From the NCBI GenBank assembly GCA_035221665.1, contig CM069154.1, forward strand, positions 5,146,001 through 5,210,000: 64,000 nucleotides of DNA, in the 5' to 3' direction. Shown piece by piece: positions 12,262-64,000 of the stretch. The translations under genes were made by a program, and so were the position numbers. The DNA comes from Okamejei kenojei (taxonomy: Eukaryota). Below the pieces are notes generated by a model, which was given only the letters and a program-made list of their open reading frames with translations, did no database searches and had not been told where the DNA came from. Every line of letters begins with the position of its first letter. The first letter of the stretch is position 1.

Positions 12262-12300
12262 CATATCAGTCATCTCATGAGGATTCTTCGTTCATAAGTT

Positions 12301-39903: not shown

Positions 39904-40165
39904 TTAAAGGCCCGTTGTCGTGGAGACGGCACTGGGTGGGAGTTGCAGGCGTCGGCCTGGTGTGGCGATGTTGTCGGTGCCTCCACCACCGCCGCTCCGT
40001 GCCGCTGCAGGACATGTCCGATCCGCACGCTCGTCCACGATTTCTGTGGGACCTCCAGCGGCACCCGATCCACCGGCTACTGCAGGGCCTCCAGCAGCCC
40101 ACTCGCGTTCATCTCTTCCCTCCACCACTGCCGACCCCATCTCCAAGGTCTCGGCTGTTTTTTTC
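39904..40165 (-). CDS. Copy B exon 6 (probable): Gly/Ala-rich cytoplasmic tail ending TTGL*
   Basis: Acceptor ttttaattgttattcaag in phase 2 gives TFK-R-KKTAETLEMG... The frame is open in both copies with only a 3-nt indel. AATAAA lies ~200 nt downstream (39697-39702, minus strand). Confidence 0.62.
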
Positions 40166-43100
40166 CTTGAATAACAATTAAAACACAATTTATAATCTCT
40201 ACCATCAAATTTTACCCGAGGAAATAACCCAGGGCGGCACAGTGGCGCAGCGATAGAGTTGCTGTCTTACAGCGCCAGAAACCCGGGTTTGATCATGACT
40301 ACCGGTGCTGTCTGTACGGAGTTTGTATGTTCTGCCTGTGACAGCGTGGGTTTTCTCCGGGTGCTCCGGTTTGCTCCCACAAACCAAAGACGTGTAATTT
40401 TGTAGGTTAATTGGCCTCTGTATAATTGTAAATTGGCCCTCATGTGTATGATAGCGCGAGTGTACGGGGTGATCATTGGTCAGCGCGGACTTGGTTGGCT
40501 GTAGGGCCTACAGTGCCCTCCATAATGTTTGGGATAAAGACCCATCATTTATTTTATTTGCCTCTGTACTCCACAATTTGAGAATTGTAATAGAAAAAAT
40601 CACATGTGGTTAAAGTGCACATTGTCAAATTTTAATAAAGGCCATTTTTACACATTTTGGTTTCACCATGTAGAAATTACAGCAGTGTTTATTCATAGTC
40701 CCCCCATTTCAGGGCACCATAATGTTTGGTACACAGCAATGTCATGTAAATGAAAGTAGTCATGTTTAGTATTTTGTTGCAAATCCTTTGCATGCAATGA
40801 CTGCTTGAAGTCTGCGATTCATAGACATCACCTGTTGCTGGGTGTCATCTCTGGTGATGCTCCAACAGGCCTGTATTGCAGCCATCTTTAGTTTATGCTC
40901 GTTTTGCGGGGAAGTCCCGTTCAGTTTTCTGTTCAGCATATAAACGGCATGCCCAATTTGGTCCAGAATAACTTGGCCACTCAAGAATTGACCATTTTTT
41001 CACTTTGAAAAATTCCTTTGTTGCTTTTGCAATATGTTTGGAATCATTGTCTTGCTGTAGAATGAACTGCCGGCCTATGGGTTTTGAGGCATTTGTTTGA
41101 ACTTGAGCAGATAGGATGTGTCTATACACTTCAGAATTCATTATGCTACCACCATCAGCAGTTGTATCATTAATGAAGATAAGTGAGTCAGTACCTCCAG
41201 CAGCCATACATGCCCAGGCCATAACACCTCCACCACCGTGTTTCACTAATGAGGTGGTATGTTTTGGATCTTGGGTAGTTCCTTCTCTCCTCCATACTTT
41301 GCTCTTGCCATTAACCTGATATAAGTTAATCTTCGTCTCATCTGTCCACAAGATCTTTTTCCAGAACTGTGGTAGCTCTGTTAAGTTTGAAATAAGTTTA
41401 TTCATGGATAACCCCTTGAGATGAACAGTCATCTCGTTTTCGAGGGGGTCCAACATAGAACATACATCACAAGACATAACATACATGGATGCTCTCATTG
41501 ACCCACCTACCCACACACCAATCCCAAAACCCCTCCATCCCCACTTGTTATAGTTTATGACAATTGTTAATTGACTTTACATATCCAATAATAATAAGTT
41601 ATGTGTTACAGCATAATGTTGATGCATAATACCATATACCACCTATCATACATCGTACGTTAGGTGGTACGTTTCCGAGGGGGTCCAACATTATTACATG
41701 ATATATTATTTCATAGTATTGTGACATAATACAATATGACCTTGTTACACTATGCAATACAATAATACATAAGTGTAATGGCAATGCGAGCGTGGGGGGA
41801 TAACCAGTTTAGAGTTTCGTACATAGAACAGTGGCGAGTTAGATATGGACACCTTAAAATAAATCTGCAGAGACTATTATAAACTACATTCAGGGGTTGA
41901 AGATGTGTGTCAAATGTATTCTGATAGACAATATCAGCATAATCCAGTGTTGGTAATAGTAGTTGAGAGACAATTCTTTTTCTCATCTGAAAGGTGAAAC
42001 AATTTATATGGCGGTAAAGAATAGCTAGATTACAGCTAAGTTTTTTAGTAATCGTCTCACTATGCTGCGTAAATGAAAGCGTTGGGTCGAGCCAAACACC
42101 AAGATATTTGAAGTTCAATACTTGTTCTAATGGTGATCCTTTATTAAATGATATAGTCAGATCTACACAATTACCAAGGCCTTGTCTGGTACCAAATAAC
42201 ATACTGCATGATTTATTTTTATTTAAAATTAATTTGTTAAATAATAGCCATTTCTGAACAGAAGTAAGATCTGATTGAAGGGATCTTTCAATTTCAGACT
42301 TGTTAGTACTAGATGTATATAGCACTGTATCATCAGCATATAGTTGTGTTTGACAGTCAGAACAAATATTAGGGAGGTCGTTTATGAAAATAGAGAAAAG
42401 GAGTGGTTCCAAAGACGAACCTTCCATTAAAGGTAACACATTTGCGTCTGTTATGAAGGTATGAGTTAAACCACAGTAGATTGTTTTGAGAAAGACCAAT
42501 TGTGTAACGTTTATCAAGCAGTAGGTAGTGGTCAACAACATCAAAGGCCTTGGTTAAATCAAGAAAGATGGCACCGGTGAGTTTACCATCCTCAGAAGCA
42601 GTGAACACATCGCTGGTGAGTTTTAACAGCGCTGTAGTTGTGGAGTGATTAGGTCTGAACCCACACTGACATGGAGATAGAATGTTGAAAGTTGAGACAT
42701 AATGTGATAGCTGGTTGAACACTAGTTTCTCAAGGATTTTAGCCACCGAGTTGATAATTGAGATGGGGCGGTAATTGTTAATAGTAATATTAAACGAGAA
42801 CTTACCAGTTCGAAGTTTGATCGTTATGTTATGAGGAGTAACGACGAGGGATTACGTGAAGAAGCCCCGCCTGGCGCTGGAACGGCATACTTCAAAGCAG
42901 CGGCATGAAAAACACAGAACATAATAGCCGGAGTAAGATAGTAAGGCTCAACATAGATTTAGAACTACCAGATGATCATTTATTTTATGAGGGTCGGGAG
43001 TGGAGGGCACGTAATCCCTCATCGTTACTCCTCATAAAATAACGATCAGACTTCGAACTGGTAAGTTCTCGTTTAATCTTACTATTTTACTTCGGAGTCA

Positions 43101-46100
43101 CGTGAGTGACTACGTGAAGATTTTGAAGCTTCTGTGTTTTTTATGTCGTAGAGTCATTCCATATGACAGTCCGGCTAGGTCAACACATACATGAGTAAAT
43201 AACCTTTTACCAGATCAGTTTTAGTTTATTTTCATAAATCTTTTAATGATAAAAGAACAAATAATAACCCCCTTTTTTACATCTGGGAAAAATCATTACA
43301 AAGTGATAAAATATATAAGTGATAACATAATTGATAATATAAATCGATAGTGAAACAAAGCAGGTGATTATAGTGAACCCAACACCGCGTGTCCAAAGCC
43401 TGTCATTGTGAGAACAGGTTTATCGTAGAACTTTGAACCCTGCGGTTTCTAAAATGTGTTCGAGTGGCACGTCCTGTAACTTCGCCACGGACGTAGCTGC
43501 TGCCCTGGTGGAGTGAGATTTAAACACATCAGTGTCTACTCCTGCTAAAAGTAACACCCGTTTTAACCACCTTGAAATTGTTTGTACTGATGCTTTTGTG
43601 TGTGGTTTCTTATGCGTAATCATTAACGCTTTTTCATCACCTCGAAGAGTCTTGGTAACTTTTATATATTGAGTCAAGTGTCTAACTACACACAACGTTG
43701 GATCAATAGGGTAAGCTTGAAACATTACCTTCGCTCCAGTTCTCCCTGGTCTGCTTTGTTTGATCAGATCGTAAACGTAAAACACAATGTTATCTGAAGC
43801 CACATGCATACAATCTAAACATAGCATTTGTAATGTTTGCACTCTTTGTGCTGATACCAACGCCATTAACATTACTAATTTAAATGTTAACTTTTCCAAT
43901 GATATAACTTCGCTTGGAGTCCATTGCCTAAGCAAAGTAAGTACAATGCTGACATCCCAAATTTCTGTATATCTTGGTTTGATGGATTTTTGTTAAAGAT
44001 TCCTTTCATAAATCTGGATATTAATGGATGAGATCCAATTGATTCATGGTCAGAAATTTGTCCTAAATAGGATGATAAAGCACTACGCGCACTATTAATG
44101 GCACTATAACTTAAGTGCTGCTCAAAATGCAACTCAGCAAGGAACTCCAATATGTTTGAAATGTTCACAGTATGATAAGATATATTTGATTGTCTACAAA
44201 AAACTTCCCATTTCTTTATATGTGTCATATATTGTCTCTGAGTGCTATCTCGCCATGATGAGACTATGACATCCATAGTTCTATCCGACAATCCAAGCCC
44301 TTGTAGTGGTCTGGTCAAAACCTGCAGATTAACAAATTCATATAAACATGTAATGGATGAATTTCTTTTGTTACTGGTTTTATTAACAAATCACTGCAGC
44401 TAGGAATTGACATATATGGTTCCTTAATCATATTTAACATCAACGGGAACCATGGTTGTGTCGGCCAATTTGGAATCACCAATAGTCCTGTGGCAGAATC
44501 TTCTATTTTCTTCAGACATTGCTGAACCAGAGCAAATGGAGGGAAAGCATAAAAGAACATATTCCCCCAATGTAGTGAAAAAGCATCTACTGCTACTGCA
44601 TCTGGATCGGGTTCCCAAGACACATATTTAGGCAATTGATGATTTAATCTTGATGCAAACAGATCAATGTCTGGTAACCCATACCGAATAACAATTTTAC
44701 TGAAAACTACTGGGTTCAACATCCATTCTGTGTTGTCTTTAAACACCCTTGATCTGTTGTCTGCCACCACATTGTCTTTACCTGGGATATAACTTGCTGA
44801 AATCCAAATTTGGTGCTTAATACACCATTACCATATCTGATTGACCAGACAATCACATGATACCGATCTTACTCCACCCATGTGATTAATATATGCAACA
44901 GTTGTTTTATTGTCTAATTGTATCTGTACATGCAGATTCTTTTTTGTAGAACAATAGGCTTTTAATCCATAAAATGCCCCCAATAACTCCAAATAATTAA
45001 TACCATATGTTTGGAGAAACATTTCCTCTTGGATGGTCCGCCTTCCCCCACAGCAGGTAAATGTATCTGTCACCCCCCCATCTGAGAGCATTTGCATCTG
45101 TTTGTAAAAATACTTCAGGCTGCTGTATTAAAATGTTTTTAGCAGCATGTGGAACATTTTCAATCCACCATTGCAATTCCAATAAAGCTTCTTTTGTTAA
45201 TTGGATAGGCCTATCGAAATGGCCTGCTCGCTTTTTTAGAGCTCGTATTTTGTCCCTTTGAAGGTTTTGGTAATGTAATGGACCAAATTCTACTGCAGGA
45301 AATGCTGCTACTAGTTTACCAATAACCTTCGCTACTTCTCGGGTGGAGGGATAAGGTTTGTGAATGAGGCCCCAACATACCGTTGAAATATCAACAATCT
45401 TGTCCGTTGGCAAAGTTACTAACATGGTAACTGAATTAATCACAAAACCTAAATAGTTAATTGACTGTGCTGGCTGCAGCTGGGACTTAATTGGATGAAT
45501 CAAGAATCCTAATTTTTCAAATAAAGTTTTAGTTGCTGAAACTGATTTTCCAGCTGATTCCTGATTATTACTGACAATTAAAATGTCATCCAGATAAGCC
45601 ATAATGATGTGCTTTTGTGCTCTTAATTGCACTAAAGCCGGTTTCAACAGTTTTGTGAAGAGCCTGGGAGCTGAACTTAAGCCATTTGGTAACGCTTTAA
45701 ATTGCCACAGCTGTCCCAGCCAATTAAATTTTAAATACCTTCGAAAAAAATTGATGTATTGGTACTGAATAGTACGCAACCTTTAAATCAATTGTAGCCA
45801 TATAACAACCTGCTGATATCAAATGTCTTGCAGTGTTGAACGTATCCATCTTGAAATGTTTATACTGGACAAATTTATTAAAGTTTGTAAGGTCCAGAAT
45901 AATTCTGCAACCACCATTTTTTTTATTTCTCGGAAAGATATTTGACACAAATTGGTGTTCATACTCAATAGTTTTTTTCAATAACACCTTTTTTAAACAA
46001 TTTGTCAATTTCCACATTAATTTCTGCTTCCTCAATAGCAGAGAACATGAAACCATAAGCAGGTTTATTTTGTACCGGAGAATTAACACCTTCTTTAAAT

Positions 46101-49100
46101 GTTATTGTAGCTCCTGAAACTGTTTGTAAAATAAACCGATCAGATGTGATGGAAAGCCATTCATCATAAAACATTTGTAACCTCCCACCAACTGGAGATT
46201 CGTCCACAGTTTCTTTAAGAACAGAATAAAGTTTTTGTACCTCTCCATATGAACATGGTGGTCTCCTTCTCCCGTATACGGGTGAACATTAGGCTGTGTT
46301 GGATGGTAATATTTTCTTACCATATTCCTGCCTCTGTTTCCAAAATCAAATCCCCTTCTTGACGTAAAATACCTTTTTTGTCCAAAAACGTAGGTCTCAT
46401 GTAGCTAATAGATTTAGCCTCTTCATCCATTCCTCTTATTTGTTTAGGCAGGTTTTCTCCAAATAGATAACCAGGAGCTTGAACACCACTTGATCGACAC
46501 AGACCTGCAAATCTCGGATGAAATATGGGCCGAATCACAATTTTCCTCATGCAATTAATTTGCACAATAAGCCCAATGTATCTCTTTGGATTTTAACCAT
46601 TTCCGACCCTTCCATTTGCTTTCCAAAAGCAGTAATGGCAGCTGAAATCAGTTTGAGGATTCTTTGAAACCTTATTTCTTGTCCTCTCATGACTGATGTC
46701 ATAGGTGTCCATATAGATGGATTAACCGTACGTACCTTCAATGAGGTGCAATTTTCCGGTGTTTTATATAATTCTGCTGTGTCAGCCATCACAGAATCTT
46801 GAAGTTGGTGAGATAGCATATAATTAATACTGGCAGCTAGGTTTTCTTCCATAGTCTCACCACTTCCTTCAGGGAAAAGCAAAATCTCTTGCCATATCAG
46901 GCACATATGGCCTTTTCTTTTTTATTTGTGGTGTGCACTCATAATCCACATCACCACTTTCAGGGTCTGACTTTTGCAGCCCTGATACTCCTGGAACTTC
47001 ATCAAATAAGACTTCCTCCACCCTTAATCCTGGGTCTGGAGTTTCAAATTCCCAATTTGGCACATAGCCATATTCTGGATATTCAAACCCCTCAGGGTCA
47101 GTTTGGGAAAGTTCTGGGTACTTGGACCCTTGTCTCATAATATTTTGGAGTACTCTCTCCATATGTTCCATTTTAAGCCATATAGCTTTATTATCCGGAG
47201 GACTTTCATTATCAGAGTCATCATCAGAAACCACAGGCCTCACAGATTTCTTTTTACTTTTCCCAGGAACATTTTCCTCCGTGGTTTGTGTTTCTGGAGA
47301 AATTATAGTCTCACTACCAGGTGAATCAACGGCCACCGGTATTGGAACCGGCTCCGCACTAATCTCTTGTCCCGACTCTTTAGCTTCTCCCCGGGACGAT
47401 CTTTTAACCCGCGAAATCTTCCTCTGAGACTTCTCCATTTAAAATTTTTTATTACCTAAGCTGGATGAGTACGCCAGCGTGACTCTGATTTTTTGAAATT
47501 TTTACTTTCATTTTTGCTGGTTCTACTTGCCAGCGTAATGTCTTTTTTAGAACGTCCCCTAAAAATTTCATTGCACTTACCTGCGGGTCCGTTCTGACCG
47601 CTGAGAGGAGCTGCACTCTGCAGCTCTTGCTTCTGCCGTCAGCGTCGACGTAATGCCGTTCCAGCGCCAGGCGGGGCTTCTTCACGTAGTCACTCACGTG
47701 ACTCCGAAGTAAAATATCGTGTGGGTCGCCTCCCTTATGCAGTGGAGTAACATTGGTACACTTCCATGCGGAAGGGAGGGTACAAGTTGAGAAGGACAAA
47801 TTAAACAGGTCGCATAGTGGGTACATTAGAATATTAACTCCTAACTTAATGAATTTAGTCTCAATACCAGCTGGTCCAGATCCACAATCATCCTTTAATT
47901 CATTAATAGCATGTTGAACGTCAACAGGTTTTATTTTTTGAAAAGAAAAAGAGCTTCTACACGTAGAGGTAGCTGGAAAGTCACAAGTACTTTGTTGCAA
48001 ACTGTAACCTGGCCATACTATTTTTGTGGCAAACCAGTGGTTTGCATCTTGCAGTGTATCCTCTGTATTTCTGTTCATGAAGTCTTCTGCGGACAGTGGT
48101 TATTGTCAAATCCCCACCTGACTCCTAAAGAGTGTTTCTTATCTGTTGGACAGGGTGTTTGGGTTTTTTTTTTTATTATAGAGAGAAGTCTTCTGTTATC
48201 AGCTTTGGAGGTCTTCCTTGGCTTGCCAGTCCCTTTGCGATTAGTAAGCTCACCAGTGCTCTCTTTCTTCTCAATGATGTTCCAAACAGTTGATTTTGGA
48301 AAGCCTAATGTTTGGATGATGTTTCCAACAGTTTTATTCTTGTTTCTCAGTCTCATAATGGCTTATTTGAGTCATTGGCACAACTTTGGTCCTCATGTTG
48401 ATAAACAGCAATGAAAGTTTCCAAAGGTGATGGAAAGACTGGAGGAAAGATTAGGTGCTGAGAGCTTTTTATACCTGCATTAAAGAGGCAATTAAACACA
48501 CCTGAGCAATTACAAACACCTGTGAAGCCTTGTGTCCCAAAATGTATGGTGCCCTGAAATGGGGGGACTATGTAAAAACACAGATGTAATTTCTACATGG
48601 TGTAACCAAAATGTATAAAAATACCCTTTAATAAAATCTGACAATGTGCACTTTAACCACATGTGATTTTTTCTATTACCAATCTCAAATTGTGGAATAC
48701 AGAGGCAAATAAATAAATTATGGGTCTTTGTCCCAAACATTATGGAGGGCACTGTATGTCCACACTTTATCTCTAAATTCTAAAGTGAACTCCCATCATT
48801 TCCAATTTAATTTAATGTGAACACCAGAGTGAAGAGATTGCACAACTTTTACCTTTTAAAAGTTGTCACACAGCTGATGGAAGCCAGGAAGAGAAGCAGA
48901 ACTCCAAAGAGTACCCAGCGTAACACACCCCAAACACGGCGAACATTCAACACGATGTCCCTGGAAATACAAGGAAATATTATTACTTCCACACAGAGTT
49001 ATCAAAGATCAACGTTGGGGAATTTTTTCATCATATTGCACACGGAATCATTCAGTGTGATCCAAGGTTGTGGCGTAGACATTGGTGAGATGTTTATATC

Positions 49101-52100
49101 GCAACATGCACCCATTCCTTGGAGGTGTTCCATGACTACATACATTAACAACTTAGATGTTCATGTTGGTGGTCAGACATACAGCACGAAAACATGTCCT
49201 TTGACCCAATTTCCGCACGCTGACCAAGATGCCCTTACCTACACTAGTCCCATCTGCCGGCCTTAGATGTTAATGTTGGAAGTATGATTAACGAGTTTAC
49301 AGATTACACCAAAATTGTATCATTTTGGATAGTACAATAATCATAGACCACAGAGGGATGAGAAGCAACTGGTATGTTGGGCAGAGCAATGCCAGCAGGT
49401 ATTGAACCGTGATAAGTGTGAAGTTATTTGTTTTTGGCATCAAATAAGGGTAGACATTCACAACGGTAGGGCCACTGGGTGTACTAAGGACAGAGGGACT
49501 TTAGTCAGGGCCAAGGAGTATTTATCAATGGACTGGAATGTGATCAGCCACGCTTTCTCAAAGTACTGGGACTGATTTTACCGACAATAAGATACGATCC
49601 TACCGGACCACCGGTGCTGTCAGTACATAGTTTGTATGTTCTCCCTGTGATTGCAAGAGTTTACTCTGGATTCTCCAATTTCCTCCCACATTCCAAAGAC
49701 GTGCGGGTTTGTAGTAAATTGCCCCTAGTGTGTAGAACAGAACTGGTGTATGGGGTGATTGCTGCTCAGAGCGGACTCAGTGGGCCAAGGAATCTTTTAA
49801 CTGAGTTGAACTGATCTTAACTAATTTGTTCTCAGTTGAGGCTGTGTTGGCTCTTCGAGTTACCAACCTGTTTGAAAGTATTGAACCAGGAGACTCAGTG
49901 GAACTTGCTGCCTCGGTGGTTGGTGCATCTTGAGGCAGGGTGGTCAGAGCCCTTGTGCTTATTGTTGTAGAGGTGGTGATGACCATATCTGGGCGGTTTG
50001 TTTGAGACCCTTGTGGAGATAAAGTGAATGAAGTTTTTGAACATTAAATGTCTGAAAGCAAGTTCTGTTCCACTTCAGTGATGTGGGGGAGATGCTTCAG
50101 TTGGGAGTGCTCTTGCTCTGTGTGGAGAGATTCCTGGGTTCAAATCCCAAACCAGTGTGGCCCCATGCAGCGGATTCCCCCTACCCCCTTCTCACCTCCC
50201 ACCAAACACCCCCCTCCCTCCCCCATGAACCCCCGGGGATGTGGCACCGAGTCACCGTCAGGACCGAGGCCGAGAATTCCAAGCTGGAATTTCACATGTG
50301 TCGAATATTCGTGGTTTGAATCCCACTCCATACATTTGGACAAAGATCCTTCTGAGGCCACCATAGATGGACCAAGCACCTTGGTCTAGACAGGAGGCTC
50401 ACCCATTTTTAAGATGCCACATGATGGCCGCAAGCATTCAGAGACTTCTTTCATGCCCTTCAGAGTCCCACAGGCTGTGTTATCTGCCTGCTGCTAGAGT
50501 TAGGCACATGTCTTCTACGTTGGAGAAGAACTTGGGAGCGGGAGGATCCATGGACTATTTTCATTACGTGGACTGAATTGGAAATAATGCAATTTGGTTG
50601 GAGGTATCTACCTGAAACATTAACTGTCATTCTCTCTCCACAGATGCTGCCCGACCTGTTGAGTATCTCATCTTGTACAGTTTGTGCGGCTCAGTTTAAA
50701 GTCCATATCAGTCATCTCATAAGGATTCTTCGTTCATAATTTATAGGAACATAGAAAATAGTTGCAGGAAGAGGCCATTCGGCCCTTCGAGCCAGCACCG
50801 CCATTCACTGTGATCTGGGTTGAACATCCACAATCAATAACCCGTGCCTGCCTTCTCCCCATATCCTTTGATTCCACTAACCCCTAGAGCTCTATCTAAC
50901 TCTCTCTTAAATCCATCCAGTGATTTGGCCTCCACTGCCCTCTGTGGCAGGGAATTCCACAAATTCACAACTCTCTGGGTGAAAATGTTTTTTCTCACCA
51001 CAGTCTTTTTTTTGTTTTTTTGTTTTGTTTATTTTATTAGAAGTTAATACAGTAAAAAACAATACAGTGGCACCTAATTTTAGGTGACAACTATGTCATA
51101 ACGTAATACATTCTATGTACAACCTCTAGTTTTATGTTTTTGAAAAGGAAATTAAAAAAAGGCAAGAAATAGAGAGAAGAAAAAGAGGAAAAATAGATAG
51201 TAGAAAATAGAAAAACCTGAAGTGTGCATATAAGAAAAGAAAACATAGAAAGTAGAAATAGGAGAAAAAGAATTTTCAAATCTTTGTTCGGAGATGTAAT
51301 TCTACCCACGACCTGAGCTGAAATCAGTAATCTTAACGGTACTGCTGCATCACATGATTCCAAAAAGTCGATGAAAGGGGACCAACTCCTTAAGAATTGG
51401 TCATATTTATCTATTAGGCGGAGTCTCATTTCTTCAAAGTGAGCTATGTCCGTCATATTACAAATCCACATTTTAATAGTTGGTATAGCTGTATTTTTCC
51501 AAAATTTAAGTATCAATTTCTTTCCAATTATTAACCCATAATTAAAGAATACTTTTTGGTCTTTGTTTAACTTGATATCTTCTACTATTATTCCAAATAT
51601 AATCCATTCCGTATTTGGTTCTATTCTTGACTTGAAGAGCTTTGTAAATATATCAAATATATCGCTCCAAAATTTATTCAACTTTATACATCCTACAAAT
51701 GAATGTGATATATTGGCATTTTGAAACAAACATTTATCGCATCTAGGAGAAACATTTGAGTTGAATTTATTTAACCTCGTTTTTGAATAATATAGTCTAT
51801 GTAATAGTTTAAATTGAATTAGATTATGTCTTGCATTAATGGAACAATTATATGTGTTCATCAGATACTTTTCCCATTTATCTTTCGGAATCTTTATCAT
51901 TAGTTCATGTTCCCAATCTTCTCTTAGTGCCTCTGTTGAGGGTAATTCTCTATTTAATATACTATTATAAAAATAGTTTTTGTGAATTTTATCGGTGAGA
52001 ACAAGATCGTTCCTATATCGTACGGGAAACACTCCCCTTTCTCCATTCTTATCCACTCCGACTGGTGAGTGGAGTTATCCAACCAGTACATTATGTTCTT

Positions 52101-55100
52101 TATATGCACTGCCCAGTAGTAATACGTAAAGTTAGGTAATGATAACCCCCCAACTTCTTTAGGTTTACACAGATGCTTTCGTTGAATTCTGTGTGCTCTA
52201 TAATCCCATATAAAATTAGTGATATTAGAATCTAGTTTTTTGAAAAAATATTTTGGAATATATATTGGGATCGCTTGAAACAAATATATTAATTGTGGTA
52301 AGAAAGTAATTTTTATAGCGTTAATTCTACCTATCAATGACAGCGGTAGCGTTTTCCAAAATTTAATCATAACATTCAGTTTATTTAATAGTGGCATAAA
52401 ATTAGCACTAAATAATGATTTGTGTCTTCTCGTAATTTGAATACCCAAATACTTGAATTTTTCTGTTGCAATTTTGAAAGGAAATTTTAATAAGTGTCTC
52501 ACATCCTGTGGTTTCAAAGACATAATTTTGCTTTTATTCCAATTTATTCTATATCCTGAAAAAGAACCAAATTCCTCGATCAGTGTTAATAAGGTGGGGA
52601 TACTCGTTTGTGTATTAGTAATATATAAAAGAATATCGTCAGCATATAATTAAATTTTATTCTTTGAGTCCTTAGTATTATATCCGTGAATATTTGGATG
52701 ATTTCTAATCCTTTCAGCCAGCGGTTCTATCATAAGGGCAAATAGCAATGGTGATAAGGCACATCCCTGCCTATTACCCCTTGATGAATACAATTTTGGA
52801 GATAACATATTATTAGTCAATATTCTTGCCGTAGGTTTATCATAAAGCAATTTAACCCATCTAATAAAATTCTCTCCCGTGTTCAATTTTTGGAGTACCT
52901 TATATAAATACTGTCATTCTACCTGATCAAATGCCTTCTCTGCATCCAATGTAACGACTGAAATATCTTCAATGTGCTCTTTGTGAGAGTACATTATATT
53001 GAAAAGCCTTCTCGAGTTATTAAGTGATTGTCTTTTAGGTATAAATCCTGTTTGATCCGGGTTTACCAATTTGTTAATATAATTATTCAGTCTTCTTGCT
53101 AGAATCTTTGCTAAAATTTTCTGATCCGTGTTTAGAAGTGATATAGCTCTGTAAGAACCTGGTTCCTCTAAGTCTTTATCTTTTTTTGGTATAAGCGTTA
53201 TTGTTGATTCAGCTAAAGTTTCTGGTAGTTTATTTTCGGTATAAGCCTGCGCGTATAAGTTGAATAATCTTGGTACAATTGACTCCTGAAATTGTTTATA
53301 AAATTCATTGCTAAATCCATCTGGTCCTGGGGTCTTCCCATTTTTCAATGAGTTTATTGTTTGTTTTATTTCTTCACTAGTAATCCGTGCTCCTAATTCC
53401 TCTTGTTCTAAACTATCCAATTTAGAGAGATTGCAATTATCTAAAAAATTTGTAATTTTACTATCATCTGTATTTATTTTAGTTGTGTATAAATTATGAT
53501 AAAATTGGGCAAACCTTTTATTAATATCCTTTGGTAGTGTTAGAAGCTCGCCCTTATCAGATTTAATTTTAGTGATAGTATTTTCCTTTTCTTGTTGCTT
53601 CAGTTGCCTTGCTAATAATTTATGTGGCTTATTCTCAAATTCGAAGTGTGCGTGTTTTGTAATTTGGAATAGTCTTATTACTCTTGCCGATAATATTCTA
53701 TTGAGTTTATATTTCAATAAAGTTATCTTATTATGTTTATCTATGGTGGGTCATTTGCATTGTCCAGATCTAATAATTTTATTTCCTGTTCAATCCTCTG
53801 AAGTTCTCTTTTATTTTCTTTATTTTGAAAACTTTGATAAGAGATTATAACACCGCGGATGTATGCCTTAAAGGTTTCCCATAATAGCGATACAGAAATA
53901 CCCGGCGTCTCATTTATCTCTAAATTTTTTTTTGTTTGTTTTTTTATATACTCATAACCTTGTGGGTTATTTAATATTTGTGCGTTGAATCTCCAAAAAG
54001 GTATTATATACGGCATTCCCTCGATTTTAAGTATAAAAGTCAGTGGTGAATGATCGGAAATAATACTATTATGGTATGATGGTTTAGTCGTATACGGGAT
54101 TAATTTTGTATCCAATAAGAAATAGTCAATTCGTGAGTAAGTTTTATGAACCGATGAGTAAAACGAATATTCCCTTCCAATTGGGTTTGCTATTCTCCAG
54201 ACATCAGTTATGTTATTATTTTTTATATAAGTATTTAAGAATTCACAGGTCTTAGTTTTAACAAGACGCTTCCCTACCTTTATTGATTTATCTAAATATG
54301 GGTCGATAACACAATTGAAATCTCCCCCCATTATTATATTTTGATAATTATGCTCTGCAATTATATCTACTATTTTCTTAAAAAATTGGGGGTTATCAAA
54401 ATTAGGTGCGTAAATATTTATCATAGTTAATGATGTATTATAAATTTCTCCTGTGACTATAACGTATCTTCCCTCTTTATCAGATATAGACTTCTTTAAT
54501 TTAAAAGGTTAAATATTATAATTGCCGTACCTCTTGCTTCAGTCTTAAATGGCCTCCCCTTTATTCTAAGACTGTGGCCCCTGGTTCTGGAGTCGCCCAA
54601 CATTGGGAACATTTTTCCTTCATCGAGCTTGTCCAGTCCTTTTATAATTTTATATGTTTCTATAAGATCCCCACTCATCGTCCTAAACTCCAGTTCAGAG
54701 CCTAGTCTTTTCAATCTTTCCTCATATAACAGTCCCGTCATCCCAGGGATCAATCTCGTGAACCTACGCTGCATTGCCTCAATCACAAGGATGTCCTTCC
54801 TCAAATTAGGAGACCAAAACTGGACACAACATTCCAGATGTGGTCCTACCAGACCCCAATACAACTGCAGAAGAACCTCTCCACTCCTGTACTGAAATCC
54901 TCTTGTAATGAAGTTCATGTGATAGGGGAGAATGAGGCCATTTGGCCCATTTTTGTCTACTCCACCATTCAATCATGGCTGATCTATCTCTCCCTCTCAA
55001 CCCCATTCTCTTCCCTTCTCCCCATATCGCTTGACACCCATACTAATCGAGAACCTATGAATCTTAAAAATACCCAGTGACTTGGCCCTCATTGGAAACA

Positions 55101-58100
55101 CGGTAAAAGCTTTTCCCTGTACGTCGGAACAGACGACAACAATAAACTGAGCTCATGAATCACCAAAGTTTGTGAGACACAAGGAATTGCAGGTGCTGGA
55201 ATCTTGAGCAAAACACAAAGTGCTGGAGTAACTCAGCAGGTCAGGCAGCATCTGTGGAAGGAATGAACGGACGATGTATAGGGTTGGGACCCTTCTTCAG
55301 ATGTTGTGTGTGTGTGGGTGTGACAGTGACGGGCAGGGGGAGAGGGTGAGGGGGCGGTTCCACCCTCCTGCCCCAGTGAGGGGACGGCAGAGGTTCTGGT
55401 CCCGGAGCGATCGTCTTTGGGGAAATGAGCCGCCAGCAGCAGAACCGCCGGTCCCCGTTCACGAGGTCCCCCCCCCCCCCCCCCCCCCCCCAAACACACA
55501 CATACACACACACACTGCTCCTTGGACAGTGGGCTCATGGACCCCAGTAAATGTGCTCTCCCCCTTCACCCCGACCCCCGGCGACGTGGCACCGAATCAC
55601 CGTCAGGACGAGGCAGGGAATTCCCAGGCTGGAATGTTCACATCTGGGAGAGTGAGGAGAGATAGTCAACGTACCTTCAGAAACCTTCAATGAGATGGAG
55701 GTCCTTTCATTGCTTGAAAAGATTCCCTTTTTTACTATCACACACCAGTAGCGTCCTTCATCACTCTTCTCCAGGTTGGCGATGGTTACTGAAAGTATCC
55801 GTTGTGTTTTGTTATCAGTCATCGATGTTCTCCCTTGTCGTGGGTCATCAGTAGAAACCACGGTCTTAGATAACAGGTAATAATCACCTTTACTCCATAG
55901 CTTCCTGTTGTCACTGTATTCCTGACCATACCGACATTCCACAGTGACCGACTGCCCCAACTCTCCCCTCACCTCCTTGGGTCCAGTTATTCCCCTTGAC
56001 CCTGTTGGCACATTAATGATGAAAGATCACTCACACTGCAGCAACACAAGCTGAGGTTTAACAATAAAAAACATGTCATTTGTGCTGTTCAGACAGGTTC
56101 ATGGTTTTGCATAGATCATGTGTAGCAAGGAACTGCAGGTGCTGGTTTACACCAAAGATTGACACAAAGTGCTGGAGTAACTCGGCAGGTAGACAAAAAT
56201 GCTGGAGAAACTCAGCTGGTGAGGGCGGAAGCATCTATGGAGTGAAGGAAATAGGCGACGTTTCGGGTCAAGACCCTTCTTCAGACTGATGGCAGATCAG
56301 GCAGCATCTCTGGAGTAAAAGGGTAGGTGGCCTTTTCGGGTCGGGACCATTCTTGATCTCCTGGTTGCCAACCCTGTCAACATCCCTTCCCATTCCCACA
56401 CTGACCTGTCTGTCCTGGGCCTCCTCCATTGCCAGAGTGAGGCCACATGCAGGTTGGAGGAACCGCACCTCATATTACGCTCAGGTAGTTTACAACCCAA
56501 CGGTTTGAACGTTGAATTCTCTAATTTTAACTATCTTCTACTAACCTGCGCCCTCCCCTTCCCCCTTGACCCCTTTTTCCACCCTGGTGGGTGAGGGGCC
56601 GGTTTTCCCCCACCTGCCCCAGTGAGGGGGCGGCAGAGGTTCTGGTCCCGGAGCGATCGTCTTTGGGGAAATGAGCCTCAGCAGCAGAACCGCCGGTAGC
56701 TGGGACCTTCCGTGGGGCTGGTGTCTGACATCCCCCCCCTATACTGCTCCTGGGACAGTGGGCCCTTCATGTGGCTCCACGGGCCGGGAGCCCAGTAAAT
56801 GATGTATGCACCACCACCACCCCCCCCCCCCCCCCCCCCTGTCCACCTCGACCCCCGGGGATGTGGCACCGAGTCACCATCAGGACTGAGGCCGAAATTC
56901 CCAGGCTGGAATTTTCATATCTGGGAGTGTGAGGAGAGACCGTCAACGTACCTTCAGAAACCATCAATGAGATGGGGGTCAATTCATTGTGTGAATGTTT
57001 TCCCTTTGCTATCACACACCAGTAGTGTCCTTCATCACTCTTCTCCAGGTTGTCGATGGTTACTGAAACGATCTGTTGTGTTTTGTCATCAGTTATCGAT
57101 GTTCTCCCTTGTCGTGGGTCATCAGTAGAAACCACGGTAGAAGATGACTGGTAATCATCACCTTTACTCCACAGCTTGTTGTAATCTCTATATTTCGAAT
57201 CATACTGACATTCCACAGTGACCGACTGCCCCAACTCTCCCCTCACCTCCTCGGGTTCAGTTTCTCCCCTTGACCCTGTGGGCACATTAATGATGAAAGA
57301 TCACTCACACTGCAGCAACACAAGCTGAGGTTTAAGTAAGTAAGTAAGTAAGTAAGTTTATTGGCCAAGTATTCACATACAAGGAATTTGCCTTGGTGCT
57401 CCGCCCACACGTAACAACATGACATACAGTGACAGTTACGAATCACTCAGAAAATACTAAACATTAATAATAATAAAACATTAATGACAAAACACCATTG
57501 ATCAAGCATGTGAACCAACAAAATATCAGATCAAAGGGAGGCTACAGATTTTTGGCTGTTGAGTAGAGCAACTACTCGTGGATAAAAACAGTTTTTATGT
57601 GGCAGCTTTGACAGCCCGGAGTCGCCTTCCAGAGGGAAGTGATTCAAAGAGTTTGTGGCCAGGGTGAGAGGGGTCAGAGATGATCTTGCCTGCTCGCTTC
57701 CTGGCCCTTGCAGTGTACAGTTCATCAATGGAGGGAAGGTTGCAGCCAATAACCTTCTCAGCTGATCGGACGATTCGTTGCAGCCTCCAGGTGTCGTGCT
57801 TGGTGGCTGAGCCAAACCAGACCATGATGGAGAAGGTGAGAACAGACTCTACGATGGCCGTGTAGAATTGGACCATCATTGCCTGTGGCAGATTGTGCTT
57901 CCTCAGCTGCCGTAGGAAGTACATCCTCTGTTGTGCCTTTTTGACTGTGGAGTTGATGGTCGCCCCACACTTAAGGTCCTTGGAGGTGATGGTTCCTAGG
58001 AACTTAAACGACTCCACAGATGTGACTGTGGTGTTGTTGATGGTGAGTGGGGTGAGGGGAGGGGGAGCTCTCCTAAAGTCTACAATCAATTCCACTGTCT

Positions 58101-61100
58101 TAAGAGCATTGAGCTCTAGGTTGTTGCTACAGCACCAGGATGCCAGCTGTGACACTTCCTGTCTGTAAGCAGATTTCTCCCCATCCTGGATCAGTCTAAT
58201 CAGGGTTGTATCGTCCGCAAACTTGGGAAGTTTGGCAGAGGAGTCTGTAGAGGTGCAGTCATTGGTGCAGAGAGAGTAGAGGAGAGGGGAGAGTACGCAG
58301 CCTTGCGGTGCCTTGCTGAGCGTTTGCGGGTTCGAGGTGCTTTCCCAGCCTCACATGCTGCTTCCTGTCTGTCAGGAAGCTGGTGATCCACCGACAGAGG
58401 GGTTCAGGCACAGTCAACTTGGAAAGTTTGGAGTGTAGTAGCTCTGGCACAATGGTGTTGAATGCAGAGCTAAAATCAATAAACAGGATCCTCGCATAGG
58501 TCCCCTGGTGGTCTAGGATGAAGTGCAGGCCCAGGTTGACTGCATCATCCACAGATCTATTGGCCCGATATGCAAATTGCAGAGGGTCCAGCAGGGGGTT
58601 TGTGATATTTTTCAGCTTGGCCAGCACATGCCTTTAGAGTGTCTTCATGACTACAGAGGTCAGTGTGACAGGCCTGTAGTCATTAAGACAAGTAATCCTT
58701 GCCTTTTTGGGTGCAGTGACAATAGTGGAGACTTTGAAGCAGGCAGGGACAGTACATATTTCCAGGGACTGGTTTAAAAATGTCTGTGTAGACCGGTGCC
58801 AGCTGTTTGGCACAGAGCTTATGAGTCGAGGGGGAAACATTGTCAAGTCCTGGAGATTTCCGGCTTTTTTGTCCTCTGAAATGCCTCTCCTCCTCCTCTA
58901 TTTTTATTGTTGATATTTGATAAGTTATGTTTTGCAGCACAGAGGGTGTGGGTGATTTGGTGTGAAGTGGTGATTGGAGGGGGGTGGACGTAGAAGGGCC
59001 CAGTCTTTGTGAGTGGGTGTGAAGTGACAGTATTTTTCATACTGGAGTCTTGCCTTAAGTAGGTGTGAAGTGGTGAATGGGAAGGAGAGGATGCCGGGTC
59101 CATTCTTTGTAGACTGGGGTCTGGCTGGGTTGGTTGGTTGGTTAACAATAAAAAACATGTAATTTGTGCTGTTCAGACAGCTTCATGGTTTCGCAAAGAT
59201 CATGTGCAGCAAGGAACTGAAGGTGCTGGTTTACACCAAAGATAGACACAAAGAGCTGGAGTAACTCAGCGGGACAGGCAGCATCTCTGGAGAAACCGAC
59301 GGGTTTCAATCTCACTACAATAGTGTTCAATCTCACTACAACCCACATCCCCATTGAACTAGTAGAAACAAGGAACTGCAGATGCTGGTTAATACACAAA
59401 AGGACACAAAGTGCTGGAGTAACTCAACGGGTCAGGAACTATCTCTGGAGAAAGTGGATAGGTGACGATTCATAGAAATATATAACCATTGAAAATAGGC
59501 GCAGGAAGTAGGCAATTCGGCCCTTCGAGCCAGCAGTGCCATTCAATATGATTTTCAATCAAAGACTTTATTGTCATTCACAAATACACCAACAACTTCA
59601 AGTTGGAACGAAATTTCGTTGCATCTGGCTCACCGTGCAACATAAAATAACAAAAGGATAAAATATATGAAAAGATAAAATAGATAAAAAGATGAAATAG
59701 ATAATAGTGGCGGCACATTATATGGAATTCAAGAGTCTGATGGCTCGGGGGAAGAAGCTGTTGCAGAACCTGGCCGTTCACTCCTTATACTGCGATACCT
59801 TTTGCCCGAGGGCAGCAGAGTGAACAGTCCATGATGGAGATGTGTGGGGTCTTTTATAATGCTGTTGGCCTTGGACAAGCAACGTTTGCACGCAATGTCC
59901 CGGATTGAAGGAAGAGAAGTCCCGATGATTTTTTCAGCCGTCCTCACCACTCTCTGCACGGACTTCCAGTCGGAGGCTTTGCAGTCCCCAAACCAGACAG
60001 ATGCAGCTGGTCAAAATGCTCTCTATGGTGCCCCTGTAGAAAGTGGTGAGGACGGGATGGGGAGGTGAGCTCTTCTCATCCGGCGCAGAAAGTGCAAACG
60101 CTGCTGCGCTCTCTTTACTAGTGATGCGATGTTTTGTGACAAGGTCAGGCTGTTCATGGCTGATCATCCAAAATCAGTACCCTCTTCTGCTTGCTCCCCC
60201 TATCCCATGATTCTATTAGCCCTAAGAGCTATATCTAACTCTCTTGAATACATCCAGTGAATTGGCCTCCACTGCCCTCTGTGGCAAAGAATTCTACAGA
60301 TTCACAACTCTGGGTGAAAAGGTTTTTCCTCATCTGGCCTTCCCCTAATTCAGGTCTCAACCCAAAACGTCACCTATCGATGTTCTCCAGAGATGCTGCC
60401 TGACCTGCTGCCTTACTCCAGCACTTTGTGCTTTACTAAAGCTGAATAGCCAGCTGCCTGTGGTGTCAGTGGTGACTCAGCAGGTCAGGCAGCATCTGTG
60501 GAGAACATGGATAGGTGACGTTTCAAGTCAAGACCATGAGATACTGCCTGACCTACTGACTTATGTCAGCACTTTGTGCCCCATTGAACTAAAGTTCCCG
60601 GCCTGTGGTGGAAGCTGGATCTGCCACTGATGTTTCAAACTCCACGTCCACCTGGAATAATTATGATGTGTCTTTTTCACACAAAGGGTGGTGGGTGTAT
60701 GGATGAAGCTGCCAGAGGAGGTAATTGAGGCAGGGACTATCCCATCATTTAAGAAACAGTTAGACAGGTACATGCAGGACCGGCCTTAGGAGTTGTGGGG
60801 CCCAAGTGGTAACTATTTTGTTGAGCCCCAGGTTCCCAGCCAAGGTCTAGATTCATAGAAATATAATTAAAGTCTATTCTGGACTTTATATCTCTATGGT
60901 AGAATGCAAAGTAATCAACATTTGCACTTAAAAAGTGCATGCGACTTAATGGACCAAACTGATCTAAGCTACATTTTAATATAAAATTGCATACATGTAA
61001 GCCTACAAGTAACAAACAAAATGTGTAGATCACCTCTGAAAAGTACATAGTTACAATACCACTTGTTTTAGTGACTGTAGAAATGATAAAAAAGTAATTT

Positions 61101-63181
61101 AATTAAATAGATCCTGGAAAACCAATAACATTGGTGAAAAACCAATCCAGGCATTAGATTTTGGGCTTCAGCCCCATCCTACCCTTTGGGCTTCTACCCC
61201 ATCCTAACTTAGTTGTGTGTGTTAGTTGTCTGTGCATGATGTGTGTGTGGGAGGGAAGGAGAGAAGGGAGGGAGAGGGCCCGTGGCGGGAGCTGAGGCCG
61301 GGGTCCGGGCGGATGGGTGTGAGCTGAGGCCGATGTTTGTAAACGTCGCTCCAACCCCCGGCCCGGCCCTCCCTGTATTGTTCACCGCGTCTCCCCGGGG
61401 AGAGAGAGGGGTGGAGCTGGGGCTGTGTGGGAAGCACGGCGACTGGAGGGGCGGGAGCGCTGCCGTGAGCGAACGACCCACCTCTCCCTCTCCCCCTTCT
61501 TCCCCTCCTCCGTTCCCCCTCCCCGTCTACCCCTTTCTTCCCCCTCCACCCCTCTACTCTCTCTCCGCCCCTCTCTCCCCCCCTCCACCCGGGGTACATC
61601 TACCTGAGCCGAGAGTAGATAACTCTGGCGTGGGGCCCCCTTACTCGCGGGGCCCAATTGGGAGCAATCGGTCCAATCGGCTTAAGGCCGGCCCTGGGTA
61701 CATGGATAGGACAGGTTTGTAGGGACATGGACCTAACATGGACAGGTGGGACTAGTGTTGCTGAGACATGTTGGCCGGTGTGGGCAAGTTGGGCTGAAGG
61801 GCCTGTTTCTACACTGTATCACTATGACTCTAACACATGTGAAACTCTGCAGATTCAGGATCTGGGATGGAGACACATGATCAGATCAGTCCAGGTCCGC
61901 TCACAAGCCACAAGACAAATGCCTTGAAGGAGAACTCAGAGGCTGGGGAAAGCACAGTGTGGAGAACAGCTCGAGCAGCAGAGTCTGTAAAGCAGCTGTT
62001 TTTTTCTCAGGAGAGATTACCTCAACTTCTCCAAATGCTAAATTGGACAGTCACTCTGGTGCTTCCTCATTTGAGATGCCCACCTGTTCCCAATGGCTGG
62101 CTCTCACAGGTTTTTTCTTTGAATGTGCTAAGATTTAGATTCAACATTTCCCATTGCAGTGCGTGGAGGGAGTGCCGTGTGTCTTTGATGGACACTAAAT
62201 GCTGGAGTAACTCAGCGGGTCAGGCGGCATCTCTGGAGAGAAGCAATGGGTGATGTTTCAGGTCGAGACCCTTCTTCAGACCAACAGTCAGCGAGGGAGG
62301 AAGTCAAGAGATATGCAAGTGGTAAAGCATTTAGCTGATCTGCTGTCAAGTCACTGAGAAAGTTCACCTGGAGATAGTTTGCACCAGAATAGTGGAGCAA
62401 ACTCTCTGGTCCAGGGCAAGAGTTACCCCAACACCCAAGATCAACAAGGCCAGCTGTCGGATCATTTTCTACAGGGAGTTAGCTGTGTGCAATTTGGCTG
62501 CGCACAGCATCACAACAGTCATTAGTGCAGGAAAGAACAAGTCTGCAAGCACTTTATCTTTAGCAGCTCGTAGCCCAGTAGTCTGCTCTGTGGCTCAAAA
62601 TAATTCAAGGTGTTAGTAAATAATTCTGAAGAACAGATCATAAGTTAATTAGTACTAGGAGCAGAATTAGGCCATTTGGCCCATCAAGTCTACTCTCCAC
62701 CATTCAATCATGGCTGATCTATCTTTCTGTCTTCTCCCAGGACTCCTAACACCAGTACTGATCAAGAATCGATCTATCTCGGCCTTAGAAATATCTATAG
62801 ACAGCCTCCACAGCCTTCTGTAGCAATGAATTCCACAGATTCACCACCTAACTAAAGAAATTCCTCCCCATCTCCTTCCTAAAGGAACGTTCTTTAATTC
62901 TGAGGCTGTGACCTCTGATCCTAGACTCTCCGCAAGTGGAAACATCCTCCACCATCCACTCTATCCAGGCCTTTCACTATTTGGTAAGTTTCAGTGAGGT
63001 CCACAAGGCAAGGCAAGCTGCAGATATTCAAGGCAATGGTATATAATTCTAAAGGACAGAGCATTTTGTAAAACAACGATTTACCTGATGTGAGACCAAC
63101 AGCGACAAGAACCAACAGAGCGACTGTTCCCCTGGATCTGGGCCGTTTCTGGTGGGTGAATTCTCCCTGTCCCACCGCCAT
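39904..63181 (-). CDS. CD300/CMRF35/pIgR-like type I membrane receptor, copy B, 6 exons, 419 aa, apparently intact
   Basis: Exons 63085-63181, 56952-57275, 55675-56001, 49868-50009, 48853-48960 and 39904-40165 all have GT/AG boundaries with compatible intron phases (1,1,1,2,2). Lengths 97+324+327+142+108+262=1260 nt, with no internal stop. Confidence 0.85.
41387..47984 (-). mobile_element. 5'-truncated L2/CR1-group LINE inserted in Tc1 and itself split by DIRS
   Basis: PLHKGGDPHDI|NNYRPIS, FLDLTKAFD, YADDT, KYLGVWLD. aagt duplicated at the junctions. Confidence 0.85.
42780..47716 (-). mobile_element. Full-length DIRS1-like tyrosine-recombinase retrotransposon (frameshifted)
   Basis: Gag-like 46317-47438; RT/RNase H 44828-46207 (LPNGLSSAPRLFTK, YLDD, INYLELL); methyltransferase-like 44315-44770 (DLFASRLN, YAFPPF); YR 43420-44318 (AQRVQTL, HSTRAAATS). 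36-bp inverted repeats 42853-42888 and 47653-47688; ICR 43008-43120. Confidence 0.95.
48853..48960 (-). CDS. Copy B exon 5: transmembrane segment with an intramembrane Arg
   Basis: RDIVLNVRRVWGVLRWVLFGVLLLFLASISCVTTFK. Acceptor atttccag, donor AG|gtaaaa, 108 nt, phase 2-2. Too short to appear in the ORF track. Confidence 0.85.
49868..50009 (-). CDS. Copy B exon 4: Ser/Thr/Pro-rich mucin-like stalk
   Basis: GSQTNRPDMVITTSTTISTRALTTLPQDAPTTEAASSTESPGSILSN. Acceptor tttatctccacaag, donor AG|gttggt (gttagt in copy A), phase 1-2. Confidence 0.82.
51008..54539 (-). mobile_element. L1-like LINE (most of ORF2), unit-B specific, inserted in a CR1 fragment
   Basis: NIYAPN, GGDFNC, SRIDYF, SDHSP, KTPGPDGF, DAEKAFD, RQGCALSP, CDKC. 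TSD cagtctt. The host CR1 is uninterrupted in unit A (~12559). Confidence 0.92.
54540..54915 (-). mobile_element. CR1 fragment (continues 50745-51007 across the L1)
   Basis: LVGPHLECCVQFWSP...RTRGHSLRIKG. Confidence 0.88.
55675..56001 (-). CDS. Copy B exon 3: V-set Ig domain D2
   Basis: ITGPKEVRGELGQSVTVECRY...KLWSKG...RTSMTDNKTQRILSVTIANLEKSDEGRYWC, a typical CD300/pIgR-like V domain. 327 nt, phase 1-1. Confidence 0.93.
56250..56288 (-). ncRNA. Minimal hammerhead ribozyme motif in the D1-D2 intron, sense to the gene
   Basis: Minus strand reads AGU-CUGAAGA-A-GGGUC-UU-GACCC-GAAACGUC^GCC. Core intact, stem I weak. Confidence 0.5.
56952..57275 (-). CDS. Copy B exon 2: V-set Ig domain D1
   Basis: GQSVTVECQY...KLWSKG...SVTIDNLEKSDEGHYWC: B-strand Cys, C-strand Trp and DxGxYWC motif. 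Acceptor cccacag, donor G|gtacgt, 324 nt, phase 1-1. Confidence 0.93.
57334..59143 (-). mobile_element. Rex1/Babar-like LINE, 5' truncated, in intron 1
   Basis: [39 protein letters not shown], (ACTT)n tail. It splits the intron motif gaggttt|aacaataaaaaacatg, which is contiguous upstream of D2. Confidence 0.9.
60775..61696. mobile_element. Non-autonomous hAT-like DNA transposon (MITE), unit B
   Basis: TIR caggaccggcctta...taaggccggccctg, 8-bp TSD ggtacatg (60767-60774, 61697-61704). Confidence 0.85.
63085..63181 (-). CDS. Copy B exon 1: signal peptide MAVGQGEFTHQKRPRSRGTVALLVLVAVGLTS
   Basis: ATG in gacATGg context, basic n-region plus hydrophobic core, donor CAG|gtaaat in phase 1 matching the Ig exon. 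Confidence 0.85.
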
Positions 63182-64000
63182 GTCTCGGCTGCGTTGGATC
63201 GGTTTGGACCCTGCACTGCGTTTGAGTTGTCCTCTTCCTCATTCACAACAGAAGTCAAACAGTCAATTCCCGTTTGCTCAGGAAATGACTTTGCAGTGGT
63301 TCGAGACTAAGTTGGTGACTCACTTGCCACCTCCCCCAGCCTCCTCACCACGGACAATGCACCTATCAGGAGTGGGCTGCAATGCTCTCCTGTTGCCTGG
63401 ATTGGAGTATCTCCTCAAAGCTCTGCTTCATCCTGGTGACGTTTGCCCGCTTGTCAGGCACTCTGTCCACCACCGCAAACATTCCCTTGCCCACCACCTC
63501 AACCCCCTCCCTCAAATGCGGGCACACTGTGTCTGAACATGTATGGGATTAGGAGGCAGAGATCAGCCATGCTTGAATGGCGGAGGAGACTCGATGGGCC
63601 GAATGGCCATATTCTACTCCTGGAACGTGTGAACTTGTGAACTATTTGCCCACCTCAAAATGCGTATCACTAATTTGTCCAGCCTTCCTCAGCTTCTCAT
63701 GGTTTGAAACGTTACCCGGGAGAAATAGGGCAATGAGGAAACATTTTTTCACACAGAGTGTTGTGAGTCTCTGGAATTCTCTGCTTCAGAGAGCGGTGGA
63801 TGCCGGTTCTCTGGATACTTTCAAGAGAGAGCTAGATAGGGCTCTTAAAGATAGCGGGCTCTTCCAGATGACTTTCTCATGCACTTACTATCCTATCTAA
63901 CTCTCTCTATTCTTCTTATTCTTCCTCTTCTTAAAATATAAAATAAGGAGTGGTACAGGAAATGTATTATGTTATTTTTGGCTTATATCATTGTAATGTA

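Follow-up and report, generated by a model that had tools for sequence, protein, structure and literature searches.

A two-V-domain receptor gene of the elasmobranch CD300/CMRF35-like family and its pseudogene copy in a skate

The window analyzed here, i.e. a 64,000-nucleotide (nt) stretch of contig CM069154.1 from the skate Okamejei kenojei, carries on its minus strand an intact skate gene that is a member of an elasmobranch family already annotated in RefSeq. Its six exons, located within the second of two tandem units (unit B, 39612-63632; unit A, 3235-21307), encode a signal peptide, two V-set immunoglobulin (Ig) domains (V1 and V2), a Ser/Thr/Pro-rich stalk, a transmembrane segment containing an arginine, and a cytoplasmic tail. 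We consider it probable that this gene specifies a type I membrane receptor belonging to the CD300/CMRF35-like family of elasmobranchs, most likely the activating half of a paired system on leukocytes. Because the family is annotated in other skates, rays and sharks, the gene is an ordinary member of it.

Each exon was searched separately and read directly from the DNA. Exon 1 (E1; 63181-63085, minus strand; 97 nt) comprises the ATG and the signal peptide MAVGQGEFTHQKRPRSRGTVALLVLVAVGLTS, ends in phase 1 and is followed by the donor GTAAAT, with the GT at 63084-63083. V1 is encoded by E2 (57275-56952, minus; 324 nt) and V2 by E3 (56001-55675, minus; 327 nt), both of which have a CAG acceptor, a GTACG donor and phase 1 at either end. 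E4 (50009-49868, minus; 142 nt; acceptor AAG, donor GTTGG, phase 1 to 2) encodes the stalk, E5 (48960-48853, minus; 108 nt; acceptor CAG, donor GTAAAA, phase 2 to 2) the arginine-bearing transmembrane segment RDIVLNVRRVWGVLRWVLFGVLLLFLASISCVTTFK, and E6 (40165-39904, minus; 262 nt; acceptor AAG) a cytoplasmic tail of 86 amino acids (aa) followed by TAA. Ten out of ten splice sites are canonical, the frame is open in all six exons and the junction phases are 1, 1, 1, 2 and 2. The exons sum to 1260 nt, or 419 codons plus the stop, the protein length being the arithmetic sum of the exon lengths. Direct reading thus reproduced what an earlier, sequence-only reading of this DNA had described, namely six minus-strand exons with GT/AG borders and matching phases that join into an uninterrupted protein of 419 aa.

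The exon model stands beyond chance, since annotated skate proteins match the exons in the same order. With the skate proteins P0002, P0157, P0159, P0155 and P0156 laid on the window by tblastn, E1 was 88-97% identical to the RefSeq leaders of these five (E about 1e-13 to 6e-15), both V exons showed 60-77% identity (about 1e-40 to 1e-55), E4 matched skate stalks at 58-69% (about 1e-9 to 1e-13), and E5 matched P0002 and P0155 at 72-78% (about 1e-7 to 1e-11). For the start of E6, identity to skate tails was 59-67%, with an E-value of 4e-4 in unit B and 6e-6 in unit A. A hydropathy scan identified E5 as the sole hydrophobic open segment across the 9.6 kilobases that separate E4 and E6.

Searching 1.84 billion representative sequences with V1 as the HMMER query returned 1998 matches, 67 of which fell below 1e-30. 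The best matches were all from batoids or sharks, and all were automatic RefSeq models. They are named 'polymeric immunoglobulin receptor-like' in Narcine bancroftii (five V domains), Leucoraja erinacea (three), Rhinoraja longicauda (four), Hemitrygon akajei, Mobula and Heptranchias perlo, and 'CMRF35-like molecule' in Amblyraja radiata (one and two V domains), Pristis pectinata, Heterodontus francisci, Scyliorhinus canicula and Pristiophorus japonicus. All of the closest proteins come from skates and rays, in agreement with the cartilaginous fish source proposed from the letters alone and, more specifically, with a skate.

Among these relatives, L. erinacea XP_055510911.1 (P0002) consists of a leader, three V domains and a stalk followed by RDIVLNVRRVWGVLRWVLFGILLLFPVSISCVTTLKRKKTAKTLEMRSAVVEEGEEQRR, and its transmembrane segment, RDIVLNVRRVWGVLRWVLFGILLLF, is of the E5 type. 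As this protein joins the same transmembrane segment to the same tail start, the E5-E6 junction is independently supported. In A. radiata, P0177 and P0178 have the same transmembrane segment and tail behind a single V domain, and P0159 has two V domains; RefSeq names all three 'CMRF35-like molecule 3'. XP_055510911.1 and these three A. radiata proteins resemble the window gene in leader (88-97%), V domains (60-85%), stalk and exon order, and the arginine transmembrane segment (72-78%) and the tail start KKTA(E/K)TLEM are common to the window gene and skate RefSeq models. Compared with XP_055510911.1, however, the window gene has two V domains instead of three, a stalk that is 5 aa shorter and a tail that is ~60 aa longer; P0159 differs in having the uncharged transmembrane segment of paralogs whose tails bear immunoreceptor tyrosine-based inhibitory motifs (ITIMs), whereas the window gene is of the arginine type. 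The window's own protein was not among the matches listed in the V1-based protein searches, so the gene appears to be absent from the protein collection, though its kind is present. The gene, called hidden at the outset, is therefore hidden in this window, but RefSeq already contains near-identical architectures from L. erinacea, A. radiata and R. longicauda.

The sequence-only reading had assigned the V domains to the CD300/pIgR/TREM group (pIgR, polymeric immunoglobulin receptor), and Pfam, Protein Data Bank (PDB) sequences and the predicted fold all uphold this. Both domains matched the Pfam V-set family (V1, E = 3e-15; V2, E = 2e-13). The best single-domain match among PDB sequences was mouse CLM-1/CD300lf (66 bits for V1, 63 bits for V2); the best of the pIgR domains, D5, reached 40-48 bits, and other CD300 members, NKp44 and TREM2 came next. 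When scores were summed, pIgR, with its five domains, ranked highest. An AlphaFold model of V1 (pLDDT, the predicted local distance difference test score, of 88) had CD300lf as its nearest solved fold, ranked first at a TM-score of 0.87 (range 0.85-0.88), a root-mean-square deviation of 1.6 Å and 36-37% identity. Ten of the first 11 chains listed by Foldseek were CD300lf and the remaining one was human CD300A; after CD300lf, the V1 fold was closest to CD300A and CD300F, then to TREM2 and pIgR D1. The second, C-C' disulfide, formed by a Cys behind the conserved Trp and another in C', is absent from V1 and V2, which have Ser at both positions (KLWSKG...SSS or LSK). Since both of these Cys are kept in horn shark P0081 and rodent CD300 P0048, and one in A. 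radiata P0178, the loss is secondary and took place within elasmobranchs.

How the gene came to have two V domains is indicated by its DNA and by a domain tree. E3 is a tandem copy of E2 with 88% nt identity and a period of 1274 nt, and the similarity extends into the flanks, with 98% identity over the 60 nt before the acceptors and 81% over the 120 nt after the donors. Replacements between V1 and V2 are concentrated in three loop regions, and a comparison of the two domains for positive selection gave a nonsynonymous rate (dN) of 0.155 and a synonymous rate (dS) of 0.074, i.e. a ratio of 2.1, which was not significant (35 vs 5 changes; Fisher p = 0.15). For the tree, 103 domains from 35 proteins and the window were analyzed by quick maximum likelihood (LG+G4, 109 columns), with the Shimodaira-Hasegawa-like approximate likelihood ratio test (SH-aLRT) as the only support measure and many forks left open. 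V1 and V2 fell into a skate-only clade of 18 skate domains plus the two window domains (SH-aLRT 98), itself nested in a clade (97) that unites all domains of the elasmobranch family. Domains clustered by protein or lineage, with the five of Narcine together, the eight of R. longicauda together and a set from Hemitrygon and Mobula. As they group by lineage and not by position, domain number has been raised separately in each lineage, and for the window gene within batoids, independently of teleost pIgR. This bears out the lineage-specific expansion and the independent origin of the two-domain form that had been suggested previously, with the addition that the duplication probably predates this gene. 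V1 groups with the first domains of A. radiata and L. erinacea (SH-aLRT 92) and V2 with membrane-proximal domains (84-87), where it shares 85% identity with V domain 3 of L. erinacea X2; with each type grouping with its Amblyraja and Leucoraja counterparts, the split between V1 and V2 is probably older than the window gene.

Behind the ectodomain, the relatives fall into two types. The hydrophobic segment of E5 carries an Arg, and the same motif is present in A. radiata P0177 and P0178 and in catshark P0089; overall, an arginine transmembrane segment with a short tail was seen in skates, Narcine, Hemitrygon and catshark. An uncharged transmembrane segment followed by ITIM-like motifs (VIYTTV, VVYATI, VTYATV) was seen in L. 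erinacea X2, R. longicauda, Pristis, Heterodontus and Pristiophorus, with ITIM-like tails in P0157, P0156, P0078, P0081 and P0168. Paired activating and inhibitory receptors are usually built in this way. When transmembrane exons of the inhibitory type and ITIM exons were sought in the window, only chance-level matches were obtained, and the transmembrane exons were all of the arginine type. In the gene itself, a basic stop-transfer sequence, KRKK, stands behind the transmembrane segment, and the tail has neither a Tyr motif nor a Pfam match. Conservation of E6 is limited to its first ~20 residues, KKTAETLEMGSAVVEG, which match the tail of L. erinacea P0002, KKTAKTLEMRSAVVEEGEEQRR, and that of A. 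radiata P0178. Relatives stop at …EEG(A/E)EQRR, and the additional tail of the window gene is Gly/Ala-rich and open in both units (39904-40110 and 3518-3730, minus); between units A and B, the extended tail differs in length by a single in-frame gap of 3 nt. Reading through the E5 donor (48851-48853, minus) gives AAA AGG TAA, a stop after KR directly behind the transmembrane segment, so an unspliced E5 transcript would yield a receptor almost without a tail.

Unit A is collinear with unit B at ~92% identity, the interruptions being transposon insertions specific to one unit or the other. The recurrence of all six exons in unit A in the same order, noted earlier from the letters alone, was confirmed, with the correction that this copy is not intact. 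Its E1 (20869-20749, minus), E5 (9168-9044, minus) and E6 (3800-3518, minus) are still open and have good splice sites. In contrast, the V1 exon (matched at 15426-15004, minus, and read over 15438-14989) contains stops and insertions, the V2 exon (matched at 14031-13674, minus, and read over 14044-13658) has insertions of 5, 3 and 1 nt and is out of frame in mid-domain, and E4 (10257-10078, minus) has a +1 frameshift. With V1, V2 and E4 disrupted, unit A is a pseudogene copy (exons 3518-20869, minus) and the gene of unit B is the intact one.

Evidence on splicing came from four sequencing runs, mapped as contigs to 55400-57500; none of the runs listed as containing this stretch is recorded as RNA, the run type being unrecorded for X3, and X4 and X5 were guessed to be RNA. 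In X3, depth was 30-155 on E2 and E3 and 0-5 on unique parts of the intron, and the contigs on E2 were 97-99% identical and stayed within the exon limits. One X3 contig of 93 nt fits 57025-56951 and then continues with 18 unmatched letters, breaking exactly at the E2 donor. One contig from X4 (844 nt) and one from X5 (378 nt) show 94-95% identity to E3; both break off at 56004, three letters away from the acceptor, and what follows is unlike the intron. These breaks show that a related gene or species uses the same sites to splice exons of the E2/E3 type. For the five junctions predicted by the sequence-only reading, the outcome is mixed: contigs stop at the E2 donor and the E3 acceptor, but none of those listed joins exons of this gene. 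High-copy repeats in intron 2 (56110-56535) and intron 1 (57317-57500) reached summed contig depths between 1e5 and 8e6 in each of the four runs, and these two repeats swamped the junction and loose-end tables of the mapping. Just downstream of E2, intron 2 has a run of more than 20 G (56820-56850, minus), and in the adjoining 56749-56819 no contigs mapped in any of the four runs.

Taken at face value, this architecture suggests how the receptor would work. The signal peptide would route the protein into the secretory path, and a stalk of the O-glycosylated type would carry the two CD300-type V domains, as the ligand-binding part, above the single transmembrane segment. The Arg in that segment would pair with an acidic residue of an adaptor bearing an immunoreceptor tyrosine-based activation motif, which would signal. 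Paralogs with similar ectodomains, uncharged transmembrane segments and ITIM-like tails would be the opposing partners. Lipids such as phosphatidylserine, phosphatidylethanolamine and ceramide are ligands of CD300 receptors, and lipid ligands would be the first candidates for the skate receptor.

Several points weigh against an activating leukocyte receptor of this kind. The stop position conserved in the L. erinacea and A. radiata tails is passed, and the tail goes on through a further ~60 aa of low-complexity sequence; the Arg may lie at the outer membrane edge rather than inside. Literature searches for the adaptor in cartilaginous fish gave nothing usable and no adaptor was identified; one survey reports that sharks have no FcR gamma chain (PMC4016189). 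That sister unit A is a pseudogene implies that birth-and-death turnover is active at the locus. Finally, the X4 and X5 contigs, being only 94-95% identical, derive from a paralog or another species, and among the contigs listed from the four runs none joins exons of this very gene, the E2-E3 pair included.

The last points raise the question of whether the gene of unit B might itself be a silent or decaying copy, i.e. a young pseudogene, like unit A, whose frame is still open by chance. Its ~92% identical neighbor has broken V1, V2 and E4 exons, its introns are full of retroelements, its tail has lost a stop position that is conserved in other skates, and the contigs listed leave its exons unjoined. 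Yet none of the six exons is interrupted, every one of the ten splice sites is canonical, and the 97-99% identical X3 contigs are confined to the limits of E2 and stop at its donor. We therefore regard decay as unlikely.

It is also conceivable, and to our mind slightly less likely still, that the mature mRNA usually contains one V exon, by skipping or mutually exclusive use, and that the main product is a one-domain receptor of the CD300 type. Skipping would be frame-neutral, because both V exons run from phase 1 to phase 1, and the one-V models of A. radiata, P0177 and P0178, share the transmembrane segment and tail. Moreover, the break of the X5 contig at 56004 fits an upstream exon ending in CAG (E1) better than one ending in AAG (E2), the contig having just 126 letters beyond this point. 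On the other hand, RefSeq models of relatives have two, three, four and five V domains in series, and the X3 contig passes the E2 donor into unmatched letters, which argues that E2-type exons are spliced onward. A transcript using all six exons would be the probable product of the unit B gene.

A counterpart of pIgR that carries polymeric IgM across epithelia is highly improbable, even though RefSeq names many relatives 'polymeric immunoglobulin receptor-like', pIgR obtained the highest summed PDB score with D5 as its best domain, and the elasmobranch clade is sister, albeit weakly (SH-aLRT 81), to ray-finned PIGR-like domains plus the last domain of tetrapod pIgR: the best single-domain and fold match is CD300lf, neither V domain groups with pIgR D1, the transmembrane segment has an Arg, the tail is without similarity to the pIgR sorting tail, and the naming is automatic and reflects domain similarity rather than demonstrated orthology. 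Its transmembrane segment and tail in particular make a pIgR role unlikely for the window gene. There are, to be sure, likenesses to tetrapod pIgR (four to five domains) and to teleost pIgR/PIGRL (two to three), namely the V superfamily and serial V domains with one exon each. However, the bird pIgRs listed among the matches to skate P0002 covered only 68-83% of the query, and D1, D2 and D3 of bird and axolotl pIgR form separate clades far from the window domains, so that no window domain groups with D1-D3; both window domains stem from duplication within skates, domain multiplication is separate per lineage, and the arginine transmembrane segment comes without a pIgR-type tail.

The weak sister relationship hints at a broader idea, which we hold to be unlikely, that the elasmobranch family as a whole may be a co-ortholog of the lineage that gave rise to ray-finned PIGR-like genes and the last tetrapod pIgR domain. 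In that case the pIgR lineage would be older than bony fish, contrary to a 2014 survey in which no pIgR homolog was found in sharks (PMC4016189), and some multi-V members could bind polymeric IgM, though probably not the arginine-type receptor described here.

Mammalian CD300 proteins (CD300lf/CLM-1, CD300A, CD300C) are closer in several respects. They provide the best V-set sequence (63-66 bits) and fold match (TM-score 0.87), have a stalk and a single transmembrane segment followed by the choice between a charged transmembrane residue and ITIM tails, and form clustered multigene families. They differ in having one V domain, compared with two in series in the window gene, and the window V domains are without the second C-C' disulfide. 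In addition, the likeness is one of domain sequence and fold, whereas in the tree rodent CD300 domains stand apart from those of elasmobranchs and group with caecilian sequences.

A further point of comparison is the family of modular domain immune-type receptors (MDIR) of the clearnose skate (Cannon et al. 2006, Immunogenetics 58:362). MDIR proteins reportedly have one to six domains, MDIR1 has a charged transmembrane residue and MDIR2 and MDIR3 have ITIMs, and the MDIR domains are said to be of the I- or C2-set, whereas the window domains are V-set. The comparison with MDIR is one of description, and no Raja eglanteria protein was among the matches of the protein database searches. PMC3031540 cites MDIR as a multigene Ig family with activating and inhibitory members that resembles CD300, TREM, FCAR and pIgR, and gives accessions such as ABC86796.1, ABC86797.1 and ABC86799.1.

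The surroundings of the exons are rich in repeats. Intron 5 of unit B, and of unit B only, harbors a long retroelement (43420-47438, minus) with a reverse transcriptase (Pfam RVT_1, 4e-15) and several more long open reading frames (ORFs) that have no Pfam match; from its ORF layout the element looks DIRS-like. A further reverse transcriptase fragment is found at 41750-42746. Intron 3 contains a long interspersed nuclear element (LINE; 51091-54424, minus), mostly specific to unit B, with Exo_endo_phos_2, reverse transcriptase and zf-RVT domains. Upstream of E2, an ORF in a repeat (57598-58155, minus) matches Pfam ALKBH8_N (1e-15); adjoining ORFs resemble the C-terminal end of a reverse transcriptase from a LINE, and the match probably belongs to that element. 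In each unit, an open segment (63369-63527 and 21046-21201, minus) lies ~190 bp upstream of E1; it follows a CAG, closes with TGA TAG and shares 72-77% identity with the C-terminal 53 aa of R. longicauda P0155. It adjoins a common repeat and may be an alternative terminal exon of an upstream gene or a repeat-derived sequence in the P0155 model. No flanking marker genes were found in the window.

As annotated members of the family exist in many elasmobranch genomes and MDIR, a similar family of a skate, has been on record since 2006, the gene opens no new question. It nevertheless shows clearly what sets the number of Ig domains in this family: a V exon is duplicated in tandem, and its intron flanks are copied along with it. 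The locus contributes an intact member of the activating type and a pseudogene to a large skate receptor cluster with fast turnover, and is as such of some use for annotating this genome and for work on how paired immune receptors arise and are lost in cartilaginous fish.

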